Sequence record: NC_031039.1
DNA: 64,000 nucleotides
Reading direction: 5' to 3' (one strand)
Below the pieces are notes generated by a model. That model saw only the letters and a list, made by a program, of their open reading frames with translations. It did not search any database and had not been told where the DNA came from. How positions within the stretch are numbered: position 1 is the first letter of the stretch; every line of letters begins with the position of its first letter. Below, piece by piece: positions 1-62,005 of the stretch. Position numbers and translations under genes: made by a program.

Positions 1-389
1 TTAAAATTAACTTTAACTGTTTTAATTTTACCATCTCTAGATCTATACAAAGCATATACAGTTCTTATAGAACCTTTAGCTGTTGGACCTTCTTCTGTAA
101 TAACTACTTGACCATTAAAGGTTTTGAAATTTTGAGTTGAAATCTTAGTGAGTTTTCCTATAGAAAATGTACTTTTCATACTACTTGAGAATACTGCTTT
201 TAGTTCTTCTGAGTCTTTTAATTCATTAACACTTTTTACTGGTGTTAATCCTTTCTTTTGAGCCTTAGCATTTGTTTCTTTAAGAGCAATTTCAATAGCT
301 TTTTTAAGATCAGGCGCTCCTTTACTTACACGAATTGCTTCATTAAACATAAATGAAGACTCAACTAATTTTAACTGTTTTTCATTCAT
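1..389 (-). CDS. Partial hypothetical, probably virion protein (runs off the window start)
   Basis: ATG at 389 with GGAGG upstream. 129 open codons (MNEKQLKLVESSFMFNEAIRVSKGAPDLK...KTVKVNF) reach the window edge. Late promoter at 413-424. Confidence 0.7.
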   Translation of the reverse strand, partial: MNEKQLKLVESSFMFNEAIRVSKGAPDLKKAIEIALKETNAKAQKKGLTPVKSVNELKDSEELKAVFSSSMKSTFSIGKLTKISTQNFKTFNGQVVITEEGPTAKGSIRTVYALYRSRDGKIKTVKVNF

Positions 390-8731: not shown

Positions 8732-9997
8732 ATGTCAATCTTAACCGAAGAAATGCGTAAAATTATTAGTAAAGAAAAAATTGGAGAAGAAAATACTTAT
8801 ACTCCTGCATATAGAACTGGAATTGATCTTTTTGATTATCGTAACGGTCGTAGAGAAAGTGGTACTAAGAAGATTGGTATTGATGGTGGAAAGGTTCTTA
8901 CAGTTGTAGGTAAATCAGGTACAGGTAAATCAACTCTTGCTATTGAGTTTGCCAGTAGTATTGTTGAACCATATAAAGAAGGACAAGTTTATCATTTGGA
9001 TTTTGAACGTGCGTCAACTTTATCACGTATTCAAACTATTACTGGTTGGTCAGATGAAAAAGTTAAAGAAAAATGGATTCTATTGAATCGTGGAATCTAC
9101 AGTGAAAGTTTATATCAATTGGTTAAATCACTAGCTAAAATTAAGCTTGAAAAATTTGAAGAATTGGCTTTAGATACAAATGAAGTTGATTTACATGGAA
9201 ATGATGTAAGAGTTCTTCCTCCAACAGTTATCTTACTTGATTCTTGGGCTACTCAAATGCCTAAAAGTATCTCTGAAGAAGAAAAACTATCAGGTTCTAT
9301 GTCAGCAACATCTATTGCTAAGACAAATAATGCTATTATTAAACGTATTATGGGTGATCTTGAACAAGCAAATATTATCCTGATTATTATTAACCATATT
9401 ACTCAAAAAATTGAAATTAACCCAATGGTTAAAACTCAGGCTCAAGTTAACTACTTCAAACAAGATGAATCTATTCCTGGAGGAACTTCTTGTATTTATC
9501 TTGCTAATACTCTTTTGAAACTTGTTTCTTCAAGTAAACTAGAACCAGATAAAGAGTTTGGAATTAAAGGATTTAAAGTAAATGGTGAGTTAATTAAATC
9601 ACGTTCTAATAGTGCTGGTAATAAATTTGAGATGGTATTTGATCAAGAAAAAGGTTTTGATAATGTTCTTACTAACTATCTTCTACTTAAATCTAGTGGT
9701 GCTATTGGCGGAGCAGGTAGAGGTTTCTATCTTAATACTCTTCCAGATGTAAAATTCTCTCAAAAAACAGTTAAAGAAAAGTATGAAACTGTTCCAGAAT
9801 TTAAAGCTGAATTTGATCGTTTAGTTGAAGAGATTATGGAAGAATTCCTATCCGGTATTGATCTCTCAGAAGATAATGATAATCTTACATTGGAAGAAAA
9901 CATTGAAGGTAACATTTGGAGAGCTAGTGACGGTCAATATTATAAATTTGATGAAAAAACTGAGGAAGTTGAATTAATTGAAAATTACGGAAAATAA
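8732..9997 (+). CDS. recA: RecA/UvsX-like recombinase
   Basis: GKSGTGKST, LLDSWA, IIINHITQKI and IPGG motifs. AACA-N6-TG promoter at 8686-8697. Confidence 0.85.
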   Translation: MSILTEEMRKIISKEKIGEENTYTPAYRTGIDLFDYRNGRRESGTKKIGIDGGKVLTVVGKSGTGKSTLAIEFASSIVEPYKEGQVYHLDFERASTLSRIQTITGWSDEKVKEKWILLNRGIYSESLYQLVKSLAKIKLEKFEELALDTNEVDLHGNDVRVLPPTVILLDSWATQMPKSISEEEKLSGSMSATSIAKTNNAIIKRIMGDLEQANIILIIINHITQKIEINPMVKTQAQVNYFKQDESIPGGTSCIYLANTLLKLVSSSKLEPDKEFGIKGFKVNGELIKSRSNSAGNKFEMVFDQEKGFDNVLTNYLLLKSSGAIGGAGRGFYLNTLPDVKFSQKTVKEKYETVPEFKAEFDRLVEEIMEEFLSGIDLSEDNDNLTLEENIEGNIWRASDGQYYKFDEKTEEVELIENYGK

Positions 9998-18986: not shown

Positions 18987-19790
18987 ATGATTACTAAAAG
19001 ACAAGTTGAAAGGGTATTCAAAGTTGCTTTACAAGAACAAGGAAAGAAAAATGATTACATAAGAGAAATTGCAAGAAGTTATAAAGGGCATTTTAAAACA
19101 TTTAACTTTTCTGATTTTGAAAATTTTGCAAAGAATTTAGATAATAAAATGTATGAAAAAGCATTCAGAAAGTTTAAAAAAGATTTTAAAGATGATACAT
19201 TAGAATTATATCTACCTTTTGATAATATGGAAATTATCTTTAATAATGGAGATGGTTTAGTTCCACTAGGTAAGAAAGAAAGATATGAGATTATTAGGAT
19301 CTTCATTACAAAGATTAAAGGAACTATTTATATTACTTCACATATTCTTGATAATGAAGAAAAGAAATTATACAATAATTATATTACTTTAGAAAATGGT
19401 ATTCTTGGAGGAATTCATGGTGAAGGAATGTTATCTGATAATTTAGCATCATTTGATTTATTTGTAAATCTAATGGTATGGCTAGATTATATCAATGGAA
19501 GTTACAGTGTAAAAATTATTGATAATAAGAGTCTTCCAAGAGAAGAAAGAAGACGTGTTAAAAGGGAATATCAAAAAGCAAGTGGCACTATTAATTTAAA
19601 CTCAAAAGAATTAATTAAAAGATATATTAGGGAAAAAGAATCAAATAAAAGAGGTAGTAAAATCACCAAGCAATTTGAAGTCAGAGGTCATTGGGTACAC
19701 CGTAAAGATGGAACTAAATATTGGAGAAGAGGTTATGTAAAGGGTAAACATTTAGAAGAGAAAACAAACAAAGATTATAATATTAGCTAG
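18987..19790 (+). CDS. Hypothetical phage protein
   Basis: C-terminal FEVRGHW...WRRGYVKG motif common in phage proteins. Confidence 0.65.
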   Translation: MITKRQVERVFKVALQEQGKKNDYIREIARSYKGHFKTFNFSDFENFAKNLDNKMYEKAFRKFKKDFKDDTLELYLPFDNMEIIFNNGDGLVPLGKKERYEIIRIFITKIKGTIYITSHILDNEEKKLYNNYITLENGILGGIHGEGMLSDNLASFDLFVNLMVWLDYINGSYSVKIIDNKSLPREERRRVKREYQKASGTINLNSKELIKRYIREKESNKRGSKITKQFEVRGHWVHRKDGTKYWRRGYVKGKHLEEKTNKDYNIS

Positions 19791-23546: not shown

Positions 23547-23630
23547 TTATTTACCGTATTAAAAATATTTTTCAAGCATATATTATATTCCTGTAATACC
23601 AGACTATTTAAAAGAGGAGGAATATAATAT

Positions 23631-30653: not shown

Positions 30654-31625
30654 ATGGTAGATACTATTTTACTAGAAAAAATTTATCATAGAACAGAATT
30701 GGATCAATTAGATGAATGCTTTGAAGAAATACTTAATCTACTACCATCGAAGAATTTTAAAGATGCTGGTTTTAAAAGGAATATATCAAAAATAGAAAAA
30801 CTCTTGAAGAGTACTTTTAATATAGATTGTAAAATTTTTCTTCATCCAACATTAAGTAATAAAGTAAGTTATGGTATGAGAATTTTTCCTTCTTATGAAG
30901 AAATGAAAGGACAATATTTAGAAGCCATTGAATCTAAGAAAAAAGGTTATCAGTTAATCGATTGTCATAATGTATCAATTGAAATTGAAGGATCTCTTTT
31001 AAACCTATTTAAAAGAGAAGGAGCAACATCTAGAATGCTAACTGCAATTTTAATTCATGAAATTGGACATAAAGTATATGTTAAAGTTCAAAATGCTCTT
31101 AGGGATGAAGAAAATTCCAAGAATATGGCTAATATTGGTTATGGTATGGGATTAGCTATGGCAGTACTCTCTATGACCGTTAGAATGGGTAAGAGAACTT
31201 TATCAGTTCCATTAACTGTAATGAGCCCAATTATAGGTTTTGTAGGTTTGGTTATGATTGTAATGGGTACAAGTTCTCTTATGGATTTTGTTGCAAATAA
31301 ATATTATTCAGAGAGAGAAATATATAGTGATAGCTTAGCAGTTAAATATGGATATGCTGATGAGATGTATCAGACACTCTCAATGCTTCAAAATCATACT
31401 AACTCAACTCATAAAATTAGTACGAATGTATTTATTAATTGGATAAGGAAAAATTTAAACTTCTATTATTTAAGAAGAAAAGGAGTTATTGATGTTCTCA
31501 AGAAAGAATATCAAACTGCTGAAACAGAATTAGAGAAAGAGTTGATTAAGAAAGTACTAATTGATTTAAATAATAAGCAGAATAAAGATTTTGGTGAGGA
31601 TAATACTCTTTTATTAAAAAAATAA
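30654..31625 (+). CDS. Putative zinc metalloprotease (HExxH)
   Basis: ILIHEIGH, downstream E..SD..A..YGY and a hydrophobic hairpin. Confidence 0.65.
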   Translation: MVDTILLEKIYHRTELDQLDECFEEILNLLPSKNFKDAGFKRNISKIEKLLKSTFNIDCKIFLHPTLSNKVSYGMRIFPSYEEMKGQYLEAIESKKKGYQLIDCHNVSIEIEGSLLNLFKREGATSRMLTAILIHEIGHKVYVKVQNALRDEENSKNMANIGYGMGLAMAVLSMTVRMGKRTLSVPLTVMSPIIGFVGLVMIVMGTSSLMDFVANKYYSEREIYSDSLAVKYGYADEMYQTLSMLQNHTNSTHKISTNVFINWIRKNLNFYYLRRKGVIDVLKKEYQTAETELEKELIKKVLIDLNNKQNKDFGEDNTLLLKK

Positions 31626-31659: not shown

Positions 31660-31848
31660 CTATTCAGTTATTAATTGTCCAAGATTATCAACTATATTAT
31701 TAGCAAATGGTCCAATATCATACAATTCATCTTCCATATCATTTAGTTCTCCGATAAATTCGCTATTGCTATCATCATCTAATTCTACAAAATCAAAACT
31801 AATTTCATCAATACCATCAAGTAGTTCTTTGACCTCCGCTTTGCTCAT
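31660..31848 (-). CDS. Small acidic hypothetical protein
   Basis: GGAGG RBS; highly D/E-rich. Confidence 0.55.
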   Translation of the reverse strand: MSKAEVKELLDGIDEISFDFVELDDDSNSEFIGELNDMEDELYDIGPFANNIVDNLGQLITE

Positions 31849-31981
31849 TTCAAATTCCTCCTTGAGTGAGAGTTGGTATTTCTAGATGTTTTTATTTTAA
31901 CCAGAAAACTTCATCTTGAAACTCAAAAAAGAAAAAAAAATTCACCTGAACTAGTTTATGCAGGTGAATCTCTAAGATGTC

Positions 31982-32695
31982 TTATGTTAGTTTAGTTAGT
32001 AGGATTCTAAATCCATTTACACTAACAGGGGAATATTGAATACTAGTTATATTTTTATCTGGAAATTGGTTTCTTATATAACTTTCAGTTTCTTCATTTT
32101 CAGGTATAGCAAAATAATCCAAAATGGAGTTATCACTATTTTCAAATGTTATAAAAGCACCATATAATTTATACTCAAATCCTTCTATTCCATGAGTTTT
32201 CTTATATTCAGTAATTATCTTATCGGATATTCCCATTGTTTCTAAAGCAGTTAATATCATTTTTTCAGAAAGATCACCAAGTTTGTCGATACTCTTTAAT
32301 CTTTTTTTACTCATATAATCTATTAATTTACTTAGATTATCTAAACCATTCCGTCTTAATAAGTTAAACGTTCTTAAATCTAGTAAATCTTTATCAATTT
32401 GATATGTTAAATTTTTCTTTCTTTTACCTTCTTGTATTTCTTCATTTTTACATTTTTCAAATGCTGTCCATACTAACTGATTTACTCTTGCTGATGATAG
32501 ATTTACGATCTGTCCTACTTCTTCATTAGAAAGTATTCTATCTCCACCAAATTTTATAATTACTGTCTGTAATTCATTATTCGTAATCACATCTTTGTTT
32601 CTTTTAAAGAATTTAATTACATCCTCTAATTCATAATTGATTCCAAAGTATTCTATTATTTCCTTGTCAATATTTCTTCTCTCTTTTCGTACCAA
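31982..32695 (-). CDS. Sigma-70 region-4 HTH fused to an RNAP alpha-CTD-like domain
   Basis: LSNEEVGQIVNLSSARVNQLVWTAFEK (sigma4-like) and LLDLRTFNLLRRNGLDNLSKL...LKSIDKLGDLSEKMI (alpha-CTD-like). Confidence 0.7.
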   Translation of the reverse strand: MVRKERRNIDKEIIEYFGINYELEDVIKFFKRNKDVITNNELQTVIIKFGGDRILSNEEVGQIVNLSSARVNQLVWTAFEKCKNEEIQEGKRKKNLTYQIDKDLLDLRTFNLLRRNGLDNLSKLIDYMSKKRLKSIDKLGDLSEKMILTALETMGISDKIITEYKKTHGIEGFEYKLYGAFITFENSDNSILDYFAIPENEETESYIRNQFPDKNITSIQYSPVSVNGFRILLTKLT

Positions 32696-32801
32696 TGACT
32701 TTCTCTCCTTTCACTCTTTCTCATATATAATATATACTTAGTTTTATATTTTAATACGGTACAAACATTCTATTAAAATATCATAATAGGAGGTTGATTA
32801 A

Positions 32802-36112: not shown

Positions 36113-36883
36113 ATGGCTGAAATGATGGATGAACAAGAAGCAAAATTTTTAACAGATGAAGATATTGATCATGTAATTACATCTTTATCAGATGATATTA
36201 TTTTTGATAGTTTGAAAGAACAGATTAGTAATGTATTTGTACAATCTGATAGTAACCCAGTATATTATATTACTTATTTTACTGGTAAATATAATTATAT
36301 TATGAATAAATATTCAGAGTATGAAGAAGTATGTGAAAAAATAAAAGAAATTAGAGAAGAATTTTATGAAAAACTTAAAACACTAATTGAAGAAAAATTT
36401 GATTTTACATTAAATTTACCTGCATTCTTTGATGATGAAGAGAAGTTTAATATTATTGGGAACCTTTATGATTTCTTCATAATTAGAAATAAAGTAAATT
36501 CAGTTAATGTTATCTCTGGATATATTGACAAAGAAATTAAGGATCTTATTAAATACTATAAACCTTTAATTGATAAAAAAGATCTTACCTATAATAACAT
36601 CAAAAAGACTATTAATAAAGATATTGCAGTAATTATTTGTAAACTACCTGACATTATTTCAAATCTGACAGTGGAATCTGGTTTTGATCTAGTACAGCTA
36701 ATGATAGATGATGAACAAGAAATTACGAATATGGTTATTGGTACTTTATTTGATGAGAATACTGAATATATTAATATTGGGGAAAGCTTTATTGATAATA
36801 TTCTTAATGCTATTAAGAAAAATGAAGTATATTACTTGCAGGCTAGAACTCAATTAGTAAATAAATATTCAGATAAAAAATAA
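36113..36883 (+). CDS. Late hypothetical protein
   Basis: ATG at 36113 after GGAGG; late promoter at 36058-36069. Confidence 0.65.
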   Translation: MAEMMDEQEAKFLTDEDIDHVITSLSDDIIFDSLKEQISNVFVQSDSNPVYYITYFTGKYNYIMNKYSEYEEVCEKIKEIREEFYEKLKTLIEEKFDFTLNLPAFFDDEEKFNIIGNLYDFFIIRNKVNSVNVISGYIDKEIKDLIKYYKPLIDKKDLTYNNIKKTINKDIAVIICKLPDIISNLTVESGFDLVQLMIDDEQEITNMVIGTLFDENTEYINIGESFIDNILNAIKKNEVYYLQARTQLVNKYSDKK

Positions 36884-54659: not shown

Positions 54660-55152
54660 CCGTATCAAAAAGATTTTCAAGTATGTATTATTACTGTGAC
54701 GATATCGAAGTAATAGAATTTCGTCATAATTCCTACGGTATCATTGTAGGGTAATTTTCTTAGATATTGTTCATTTACACGGACTCAAACATGTGCCCGT
54801 AGCTGTAACAATAAGAAACACAAAAACTAGTAATAAATAAGGTAATAAAAGAATGGTTGGAAAGACAAAAATATTCATCAGGCTACATACCACGAAAAGT
54901 GTATTGAACGAATGACAATACCCACCTAGTGATTATAGCAAGATCTTTCACCATTCTCCGTATCCTTATAAAGAGAAAAAGGATTTTTTAAAATGGAGAG
55001 GAGAATACGCTATGACAAACACAGTTGAGAAAAATGATTGTCTGGGAAAATTCCCTATTGATGCAGTAAGAATTAGAAGTTCTATTATTTAAACATATAC
55101 GACGACTACTTTTACTATGGGTGGGGGCAACCCCACCCATAGGGCTTTTTTT
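54660..55152 (+). ncRNA. Candidate structured non-coding RNA or long structured leader
   Basis: No ORF over 26 aa, several nested and long-range stems, and a strong terminator at the end. Confidence 0.45.
55115..55152 (+). terminator. Rho-independent terminator
   Basis: 12-bp stem CTATGGGTGGGG-GCAA-CCCCACCCATAG followed by a T7 run. Confidence 0.85.
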
Positions 55153-61543: not shown

Positions 61544-62005
61544 TCAATGATTATATGATTCAATTGTTACTGAAATCTCTTTAATTCCAAAGCTTTTAAT
61601 AGTATTTTTAATTCTTTCAAATTGTTCATCAATATTGTCAATATTAATATCTTGGATGTTTAAACTTATAGAACCACTATCAAATTTCTTTTCAATTGGT
61701 TTATTTAAAGATTCATTAACTATGTGAGTTGGTGTAATTCCCTTTACATTATCCTTTTCTTCTGTATAATTTAAAGGTTTTCTAACTCCATATCTAATTT
61801 CTTCTTCTGGAGTCATTTTTCTAGTGATTACCTCACCATGCATACTTTCTTTTCGTGGTCTCTTACCTCTAATTTTTGAACCATGATATTGTACTGTTTG
61901 ATATTTTACCCCAGTCTTTTTAGAAATATCAGAATAAGACAGATCAGTCTCTCCAATTAATCTTTTTGCTTCTTCAATATTATATTGTCCATTCTCTCTT
62001 CCCAT
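61544..62005 (-). CDS. HTH DNA-binding protein
   Basis: LSYSDISKKTGVKYQTVQYH. Confidence 0.65.
   Translation of the reverse strand: MGRENGQYNIEEAKRLIGETDLSYSDISKKTGVKYQTVQYHGSKIRGKRPRKESMHGEVITRKMTPEEEIRYGVRKPLNYTEEKDNVKGITPTHIVNESLNKPIEKKFDSGSISLNIQDINIDNIDEQFERIKNTIKSFGIKEISVTIESYNH

Follow-up and report, generated by a model that had tools for sequence, protein, structure and literature searches.

A pre-early protein of Bacillus phage AR9 joins sigma-70 region 4 and the RNA polymerase alpha subunit C-terminal domain in one chain

AR9 and related jumbo phages have been stated to encode no homologues of the alpha (assembly) or sigma (specificity) subunits of RNA polymerase (PMC5312081), and the absence of an alpha subunit from their polymerases, from which an earlier reading of the present locus set out (the original prediction), agrees with the literature (PMC5312081, PMC7598289). 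What, then, is the role in such a phage of a protein that resembles parts of both subunits? The protein is gp120, the product of gene g120 of Bacillus phage AR9. Our window, a stretch of 64,000 nucleotides (nt) from record NC_031039.1, corresponds with 100% identity to positions 62001 to 126000 of the AR9 record KU878088. Its sequence and list of open reading frames place on the minus strand, at positions 31982 to 32695, a frame of 237 amino acids that starts with TTG at 32695, stops at 31982 to 31984, and is 100% identical to g120 of KU878088. We find that gp120 contains sigma-70 region 4 and an alpha subunit C-terminal domain (alpha-CTD) fused in one chain, a domain call that we regard as solid. 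Homologues of the end domains with which alpha and sigma read DNA are present in the PBS1 group after all, fused to each other and expressed first.

The sigma part is a region-4-like helix-turn-helix (HTH) at residues 29 to 86 (window positions 32438 to 32611; this and all other features of g120 lie on the minus strand). By itself, AR9 gp120 matches Pfam Sigma70_r4 (PF04545) below threshold (E = 0.011, 15.7 bits against 24.1 bits, residues 55 to 83), and the full-length sequence of its most distant orthologue, P0004, scores 42.8 bits, above that threshold. A family profile of three sequences (AR9, Goe21, and P0004), searched against the sequences of all solved structures, matches SigA/RpoD region-4 chains (E = 3.7e-6, residues 34 to 83), and hhalign comparison with an alignment of bona fide RpoD region 4 yields a probability of 97.2% (E = 3.9e-11, residues 29 to 86). 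With a structural model of gp120 as the query, Foldseek retrieves sigma region-4 structures (4g6d_A, 1ku3, 1ku7, and 3n97_D) at a probability of ~1.0, with target template-modeling (TM) scores of 0.73 to 0.80 and root mean square deviations of 1.2 to 2.2 Å; the top structural match of this part is 4g6d. The HTH that the original prediction had recognized is thus real, but it does not start at residue 50: homology begins at about residues 29 to 34 and includes the helix of region 4.1.

The alpha-CTD-like domain predicted to follow it is a (helix-hairpin-helix)2 [(HhH)2] module at residues 97 to 159 (32219 to 32407). The Pfam model RNA_pol_A_CTD (PF03118) scores every family member below its cutoff of 23.8 bits: AR9 gp120 reaches 15.3 bits (E = 0.017, residues 91 to 152) and P0004 falls just short, at 21.7 bits. 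The NCBIfam rpoA model matches residues 78 to 156 (E = 6e-6) through its positions 216 to 293 of 298 only, scoring 25.7 bits against a cutoff of 227.8. The family profile matches solved alpha subunits (E = 3.8e-5, residues 95 to 157), and the profile-profile check proposed for both domains, run with hhalign, returns 97.2% here as well when the targets are alpha-CTD domains that pass their threshold (E = 3.5e-11, residues 97 to 159). Among the 81 matches of the family profile to solved structures (E up to 1), the best 60 are all to sigma region 4 or alpha-CTD.

AlphaFold runs with a single sequence or a shallow alignment gave an unusable model (mean predicted local distance difference test [pLDDT] of 49.7) and were replaced by a run on a 30-row alignment to which domain pieces had been added. 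The resulting model has a mean pLDDT of 83.7, with values of ~96 in the sigma-4 part and 88 to 96 in the alpha-CTD part, where helices at residues 107 to 115, 121 to 130, and 141 to 153 fit the alpha-CTD fold. Residues 1 to 28 (32612 to 32695) belong to no assigned family and contribute two short helices (9 to 17 and 23 to 32; pLDDT of 67 to 88). Between the two domains, a Lys/Glu-rich linker (residues 87 to 96; 32408 to 32437) prolongs the recognition helix, which is modeled as one helix from 68 to 92 with a dip in pLDDT to 66. The remainder, residues 160 to 237 (31985 to 32218), is modeled as an acidic alpha/beta domain with a helix (158 to 167), a beta-hairpin (strands 175 to 184 and 190 to 198), a second helix (203 to 209), and a last strand (216 to 224), at pLDDT values of 70 to 92, and the domain is conserved in P0004, an orthologue of 27% identity. 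The domain was expected to be unrelated to the other two, and it found no relatives in Pfam, among the solved-structure sequences searched with the profile, or in the PDB and BFVD collections searched with Foldseek.

Sigma70_r2 and Sigma70_r3 were not detected in gp120 by Pfam or NCBIfam at E values of up to 10, with 28 residues preceding region 4, and the alpha N-terminal domain families of the same two collections were likewise unmatched. Lacking both a sigma region 2 and an alpha N-terminal domain, gp120 belongs to neither the sigma factors nor the alpha subunits. Defense and antidefense models (PADLOC) returned only noise, and no paralogue of gp120 was found within the window.

The alpha-like piece is already present in database names, so part of this observation is not new to the databases. 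The GenBank name of g120 is "hypothetical protein," RefSeq (NC_031039 / NC_043027) calls it "RNA polymerase," and the identical gene 6 of PBS1 (MF360957) is named "RNA polymerase subunit A." PHROG 28674 ("RNA polymerase") matches residues 1 to 237 with an E value of 1.6e-163, the family being essentially gp120 itself. These polymerase names are over-annotations from alpha-CTD similarity alone, and none of the records annotates the sigma-4 domain. The literature searched contained no work on gp120 or on this fusion; the architecture combines known parts in a new way and is unreported in the AR9 literature searched.

When is the fusion made? The TTG start of g120 is preceded by a Shine-Dalgarno GGAG 9 nt upstream, and the 25-nt leader contains AAAGGAGAG (32703 to 32711). 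Transcription starts at a G at position 32720, 6 nt downstream of AAGTATATATTAT (32727 to 32739), an early promoter core of the type read by the virion RNA polymerase that deviates by one mismatch from the AR9 early consensus. An early-type motif had been noted upstream of the frame; besides being recovered from the sequence by consensus search, the promoter is annotated in GenBank and has been verified by primer extension, with a product at 5 min after infection (PMC5312081). Directly 3' of the stop codon, at 31925 to 31973, RNA folding predicts an intrinsic-terminator-like hairpin (AUUCACCUG / CAGGUGAAU) followed by U9CU6; the hairpin has 9 bp, contains G and C, folds at -15.7 kcal/mol (z = -2.9), and is 100% conserved in Goe21. 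The published transcript levels of g120, in fragments per kilobase per million mapped reads (FPKM), are 313, 237, and 167 at 5, 20, and 40 min. In the same series, the downstream gene g119 follows an unrelated, late course (77, 330, and 10,726), and the divergently oriented large terminase gene g121, which adjoins g120, rises 20-fold late (88, 177, and 1,930). The promoter and terminator of its own, together with the difference in FPKM course from its neighbors, make g120 a one-gene unit of the "pre-early" class, as named by Lavysh et al. We considered g119 as an operon partner of g120 and rejected it, given the intervening terminator and the very strong late expression of g119. The product of g119 (31660 to 31848, minus strand; own AAGGAGG site) has 62 amino acids, a net charge of -17, and an isoelectric point of 4.1; its composition resembles that of a DNA mimic, it matched no family, and it shares weak similarity, over 17 residues only, with the syntenic open reading frame of the metagenomic contig described next.

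The gp120 family is narrow. It comprises the ~100% identical copies of AR9, PBS1, and Internexus, the 85% identical copy of Goe21, and P0004 (27% identity; E = 5e-14 in the exhaustive HMMER scan), a distant full-length orthologue on metagenomic contig L003. Word-indexed searches, the exhaustive HMMER scan of 1.8 billion representatives, a scan of IMG/VR loci, and tblastn against phages returned no other members. A homologue is absent from BpSp, a phage of the same genus that infects B. pumilus, whose genome was read whole and has no detectable sigma-4 or alpha-CTD protein of any kind (the best candidate, gp261, has an hhalign probability of only 3.8%), and from the Staphylococcus, Listeria, and Yersinia relatives. 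The contig bearing P0004 (Logan SRR12632060_494; 260,603 bp, of which 20.7 kb was read) derives from an uncultured PBS1-like jumbo phage and carries a gene for a uracil-DNA glycosylase inhibitor domain. Its capsid protein, beta-N subunit, and terminase are 77 to 83% identical to those of AR9, and its core proteins overall 72 to 83%, compared to 27% for gp120, indicating that gp120 evolves far faster than the core. The orthologue also lies at a different locus, where the non-virion beta-N subunit gene stands two genes upstream of it, but its layout is that of AR9: its early core is perfect, the start G follows 6 nt later, and a terminator-like T run of its own lies upstream. The AR9 early cluster g108 to g111 is replaced in this contig by two other genes and the gp120 orthologue.

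Within the narrow family, g120 is constrained. Between the AR9 and Goe21 alleles, the ratio of nonsynonymous to synonymous substitution rates (dN/dS) is 0.20, which marks g120 as a real gene. Differences are not evenly spread: the promoter, codons 1 to 28, codons 217 to 237, and the terminator are essentially identical, whereas codons 29 to 216 have a dS of ~0.6 and a dN/dS of 0.17 (0.13 in the sigma-4 domain, 0.10 in the alpha-CTD, and 0.30 in the C-terminal domain). The linker, residues 87 to 96, is the most variable segment, with a one-residue insertion or deletion and a dN exceeding dS. From this pattern, g120 looks like a mosaic allele in which exchange was confined to the domain-coding part (codons 29 to 216; 32048 to 32611), and the substitution rates indicate that all three domains are nevertheless under purifying selection. 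Taken as a whole, the way in which g120 has evolved is characteristic of a functional accessory gene and not of a core component. A further copy, P0003, sits on a 1,261-bp contig of a B. subtilis assembly; this protein (DA469_22380) has 140 amino acids, is identical to gp120 up to about residue 131, and then diverges. The break falls at the A7 run of g120, which suggests a frameshift or a sequencing error in phage DNA contained in a host assembly.

Alignment of the annotated AR9 early promoters revealed, upstream of g120 and a subset of other genes, a block (A)CCGTATTAAA(A) separated from the downstream early core by exactly 10 nt; relative to the start it occupies -39 to -30. At the g120 promoter (P120) it takes the form ACCGTATTAAAA (32749 to 32760, minus strand; -40 to -29), and its consensus is C[CT]GTAT[TC][AG]AA, 10 nt upstream of the AAATATATATTAT core. 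In a scan of the AR9 genome allowing one mismatch, 9 of the 30 matches lay exactly 10 nt before an early core, at promoters P047, P048, P069, P108, P120, P169, P234, P253, and P292, the last across the record junction. The P108 element is at window positions 23554 to 23563 (plus strand), and the others are at record positions 11 to 20 (minus strand), 39436, 39688, 56739, 139386, 201677, and 213830. The eight published pre-early genes are served by six promoters, every one of which has the element (P = 5e-5, Fisher test). The median ratio of the 5-min to the 20-min FPKM of first genes is 1.18 with the element and 0.24 without it (P = 6.7e-5, Mann-Whitney test), transcripts from element-bearing promoters ceasing to accumulate after 5 min. 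The AR9 transcriptome paper does not mention the element (PMC5312081), and as a mark of pre-early promoters it is apparently undescribed. It would supply a sequence basis for the unexplained pre-early class and a second recognition element for the still uncharacterized virion polymerase. A possible unannotated, degenerate promoter of this kind lies upstream of g144 (window positions 54660 to 54692, plus strand; AR9 record 116660 to 116692), where CCGTATCAAA precedes AAGTATGTATTAT, which has two mismatches to the early core, with a 9-nt spacing.

The element precedes g120 in AR9, Goe21, and L003, so that the cassette of element, core promoter, and gene is kept in L003 despite the different locus. 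L003 has it at two promoters, that of its gp120 orthologue and the one syntenic with AR9 P120; the elements in this contig lie at 9939 to 9948 (plus strand) and 19160 to 19169 (minus strand). The composite of element and core was found in IMG/VR in AR9 itself only. In BpSp, C[CT]GTAT[CT][AG]AA occurs with the same spacing on ~8 of 44 early cores, with elements starting 20 nt upstream of the cores at 30787 (minus strand), 61673, 105780, 138705, 179964, 192934, and 246499. The element is therefore conserved in three Takahashivirus genomes, one of which, BpSp, has no gp120.

What gp120 might bind can be approached through the residues by which its two modules contact DNA in the bacterial enzyme. 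In Escherichia coli, DNA binding by alpha depends on the "265 determinant" (R265, N268, G296, K298, and S299), and sigma70 contacts the -35 hexamer (TTGACA) through R584, E585, R586, R588, and Q589. Residues of gp120 were mapped onto standard E. coli numbering with the 30-row A3 alignment and with alignments of the B. subtilis alpha-CTD. On the alpha side, R108, N111, and G140 correspond to R265, N268, and G296 and are invariant in the family, and S143 corresponds to S299 and is shared by AR9 and Goe21, whereas P0004 lacks it. The retention of R108, N111, and G140 makes minor-groove DNA binding by the alpha-CTD part plausible. On the sigma side, R70 and Q73 correspond to R586 and Q589 and are invariant. 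The net charge of the AR9 protein is -1 in the sigma-4 domain, +2 in the alpha-CTD, and -4 in the C-terminal domain. The original prediction had also envisaged titration of host activators; at the position of B. subtilis alpha Y263, AR9 gp120 has F110 and the orthologue has C, and this variation leaves a titration of Spx-type activators without conserved support.

Our tentative proposal is that gp120 is an accessory pre-early DNA-binding factor, of a take-over or regulatory kind, acting on promoter-upstream DNA. The injected virion polymerase transcribes g120 from its own one-gene unit in the first minutes of infection, and gp120 would bind composite sites in promoter-upstream regions, a specific sequence beside an A/T tract, with its re-specified HTH on a major-groove hexamer and its (HhH)2 module on the adjacent A/T-rich minor groove. 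Binding would then interfere with or re-route transcription initiation, most probably that of the host sigma-A polymerase or on the host chromosome as part of take-over, and the private C-terminal alpha/beta domain would probably serve for self-association or for holding a partner. That gp120 binds DNA, what it targets, and how it affects transcription are inferences. They are favored by the presence of both domains, by pre-early expression from a promoter and terminator of its own, by purifying selection on all three domains, by the absence of gp120 from the annotated virion proteins and non-virion polymerase subunits, by the retained alpha-CTD contacts and the R70 and Q73 of the recognition helix, by the pairing of alpha-CTD and sigma region 4 on DNA in structure 3n97, which offers a precedent, by an accessory, host-linked distribution (PBS1-like phages of B. 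subtilis and one metagenomic relative), and by the fall in host reads during infection.

Several observations weigh against this proposal. Alpha-CTD structures are absent from the best 50 Foldseek matches to the gp120 model, so that the alpha-CTD call rests on sequence profiles and on the helix pattern of the model. The position of alpha K298 is occupied by leucine (L142) in gp120 or by threonine in the family. AR9 gp120 keeps two of the five -35-contact residues, with R584, E585, and R588 replaced by S68, A69, and N72 (P0004 has Y, T, R, R, and Q at the five positions); these replacements indicate that the HTH, if it binds DNA, does not read a canonical -35 element. Combined with the net charge of -1, they suggest that DNA affinity may be low, and the idea that gp120 occupies host -35 elements is weakened. 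The phage does not depend on host RNA polymerase, making a host-directed factor dispensable, and host mRNA declines only about 2-fold during AR9 infection, with only 34 host genes changed, leaving no strong shut-off to be explained. Such weak shut-off and an acidic, partly de-specified sigma-4 domain argue against a strong occluder of host promoters.

A domain that has lost its -35-reading residues and its positive charge could instead be one that no longer needs DNA. It is conceivable, though unlikely, that gp120 is a decoy that docks on polymerase, with its sigma-4 part on the beta-flap tip of the host core or its alpha-CTD part on the partners of alpha-CTD, competing with sigma-A or activators and lowering host initiation without sequence-specific DNA binding. 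The K-F-G motif of region 4.1 (K48 and F49 correspond to sigma70 R562 and F563) is invariant even between orthologues that are 27% identical, and rapid divergence with a host-linked distribution is typical of proteins that bind host proteins. Phages are also known to target this interface. An example is G1 ORF67, which binds domain 4 of sigma-A, and the entry for that pair, 4g6d, is the top structural match of the sigma-4 part of gp120. However, the last helix of primary sigmas, which packs against the flap, appears in the model to have given way to a helix that continues without a break into the linker, the most conserved alpha-CTD residues are the DNA-contacting Arg and Asn, which point to DNA, and the weakness of host shut-off counts against a decoy as well. 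More doubtful still is a feedback regulator that would bind ACCGTATTAAAA (-40 to -29) and shut off or boost the pre-early promoters, its own included. A GC-containing hexamer with an A tract at the -35 position initially seemed an ideal site for sigma-4 plus alpha-CTD, with gp120 as an autoregulator, since this is the composite form expected for an HTH joined to a minor-groove reader; the presence of the element before g120 in AR9, Goe21, and L003, its occurrence on every promoter of the pre-early genes, and the arrest of element-driven transcripts after 5 min agree with such a role. Because BpSp retains the element on ~8 promoters without gp120 or any sigma-4 or alpha-CTD protein, gp120 is not its obligatory reader, and we downgraded this reading to a minor rival. 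The element hardly varies between phages even where gp120 has 27% identity or is missing, which makes the conserved virion polymerase the likelier reader. Another DNA-binding protein, gp257, is encoded in an element-driven operon, and promoter strength or mRNA stability could explain the kinetics just as well.

Roles within the phage's own machinery seem much less probable. In view of phage polymerases that lack alpha and sigma homologues, gp120 might lend sigma-4- and alpha-like upstream contacts to the virion or the non-virion enzyme as an accessory subunit, a role also suggested by the location of its gene in L003, two genes from that of the beta-N subunit, and by the "RNA polymerase" labels of RefSeq, PBS1, and PHROG. 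We think this very unlikely. The GenBank record assigns five subunits to the non-virion enzyme (g089, g105, g154, g226, and g270) and g078, g145, g189, and g264 to the virion enzyme, and labels g125 "virion protein"; neither the polymerase subunits nor the virion proteins so annotated include gp120. Moreover, early transcription needs no new protein synthesis, the g120 transcript falls just as late transcription rises, BpSp and other relatives have the same polymerases without gp120, and the names were transferred from alpha-CTD similarity alone. We give least credence to a DNA-binding role outside transcription, whether in packaging (as a small-terminase-like protein), replication, or nucleoid handling. 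Small terminases have an N-terminal HTH, a helical middle, and a beta-rich C terminus, an order that gp120 loosely recalls, its gene adjoins that of the large terminase in AR9, and the stretches read contain no annotated small terminase. But g120 peaks at 5 min and then falls as the terminase gene climbs, the orthologue in L003 is not beside the terminase gene, BpSp, in which the terminase and capsid genes are direct neighbors, lacks it altogether, and no terminase family was matched. On timing and on synteny in L003 and BpSp, we rejected the identification of gp120 as a small terminase.

Where the fusion came from bears on how it is to be read. To call gp120 a chimera of host modules, as in the original prediction, is correct as a statement of domain homology but not as one of recent capture, since its identity to Firmicute SigA region 4 and RpoA CTD is ~20 to 30%. 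Nor are RpoD and RpoA its nearest non-phage relatives in the exhaustive search; these are orphan bacterial proteins (sigma-4-then-alpha-CTD or alpha-CTD repeats), annotated as "hypothetical," from uncultured Clostridia (P0005, P0010 to P0016, and P0087). These proteins are 264 to 672 amino acids long, and in them sigma region 4 is followed by one degenerate and two canonical alpha-CTDs. On each of the three contigs read (those of P0005, P0013, and P0014), the gene is chromosomal, in the order ftsY-[gene]-ylxM-ffh-rpsP-khpA-rimM-trmD, and lies between ftsY and ylxM-ffh at L004 8001 to 9296, L017 6001 to 7290, and L018 2315 to 3556; P0087 is a fourth, smaller member in another chromosomal context. 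The product of ylxM is itself a sigma-4-like HTH protein. Like gp120, these proteins present sigma region 4 and then an alpha-CTD-like domain, and the gp120 profile is collinear across both (P0013, profile positions 35 to 180). Unlike gp120, they are longer, with an insert of ~50 residues and two extra alpha-CTDs, and they lack the gp120 C-terminal domain, so that gp120 shares only its first two modules with them and differs in C terminus and in its phage context. The same module order in Clostridia shows that sigma-4-then-alpha-CTD is recurrent and not peculiar to phage.

Were gp120 to bind DNA or polymerase, it would provide the first functional lead for this uncharacterized chromosomal family. 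It would then also be a small and experimentally tractable system in which to ask what a detached sigma-4/alpha-CTD pair is capable of and how host transcription is handled by a phage that does not need the host polymerase. A bolder extension, which we hold to be speculative and improbable, is that gp120 is a free-standing reader of a composite major- and minor-groove site upstream of promoters that would switch a whole promoter class, that of host UP/-35 elements or the phage ACCGTATTAAAA class, off or on. Such a reader might tell thymine-containing host DNA from uracil-containing phage DNA through its major-groove contacts, and the Clostridia proteins encoded next to ffh would be its cellular version. 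If this were true, control of transcription would lie with a detached copy of the parts by which the polymerase itself reads DNA.

Elsewhere in the window, the GenBank note "pfam07417 transcriptional regulator Crl" on g123 (36113 to 36883, plus strand) is unsupported, with Pfam Crl giving an E value of 0.13 and 12.5 bits against a threshold of 27 bits. Crl is a sigma-S-binding protein.

How, finally, does gp120 compare with the systems from which its parts are known? It has the same fold as sigma-70 region 4 (Firmicute SigA domain 4; 4g6d, 1ku3/1ku7, and 7ckq), with the helix of region 4.1 followed by the 4.2 HTH, and it keeps the equivalents of R586 and Q589 and the K-F-G motif of region 4.1. 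It differs from sigma-70 in the replacement of R584, E585, and R588, in an identity of ~25%, in the flap-packing helix, which the model predicts to be replaced by a long helix into the linker, and in the absence of regions 1 to 3, without which it cannot act as a sigma factor. Like alpha-CTD (3gfk_B, 1z3e_B, and 8syi_A), it has an (HhH)2 module of ~60 residues with equivalents of R265, N268, G296, and S299, but K298 has become Leu, and the N-terminal assembly domain of the alpha subunit is missing. In the ternary complex 3n97, alpha-CTD and sigma region 4 lie side by side on UP/-35 DNA; there the same two modules are associated non-covalently, whereas in gp120 they are covalently joined, sigma-4 first, through a linker of ~10 residues, and are part of no polymerase. 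S. aureus phage G1 ORF67, T4 AsiA, and Thermus phage P23-45 gp39 are early phage proteins that target the -35- and UP-reading part of the host polymerase. A functional analogy of gp120 to these proteins is possible, with the difference that those proteins are non-homologous ligands of sigma region 4 or the flap, whereas gp120 is itself a homologue of the modules concerned.

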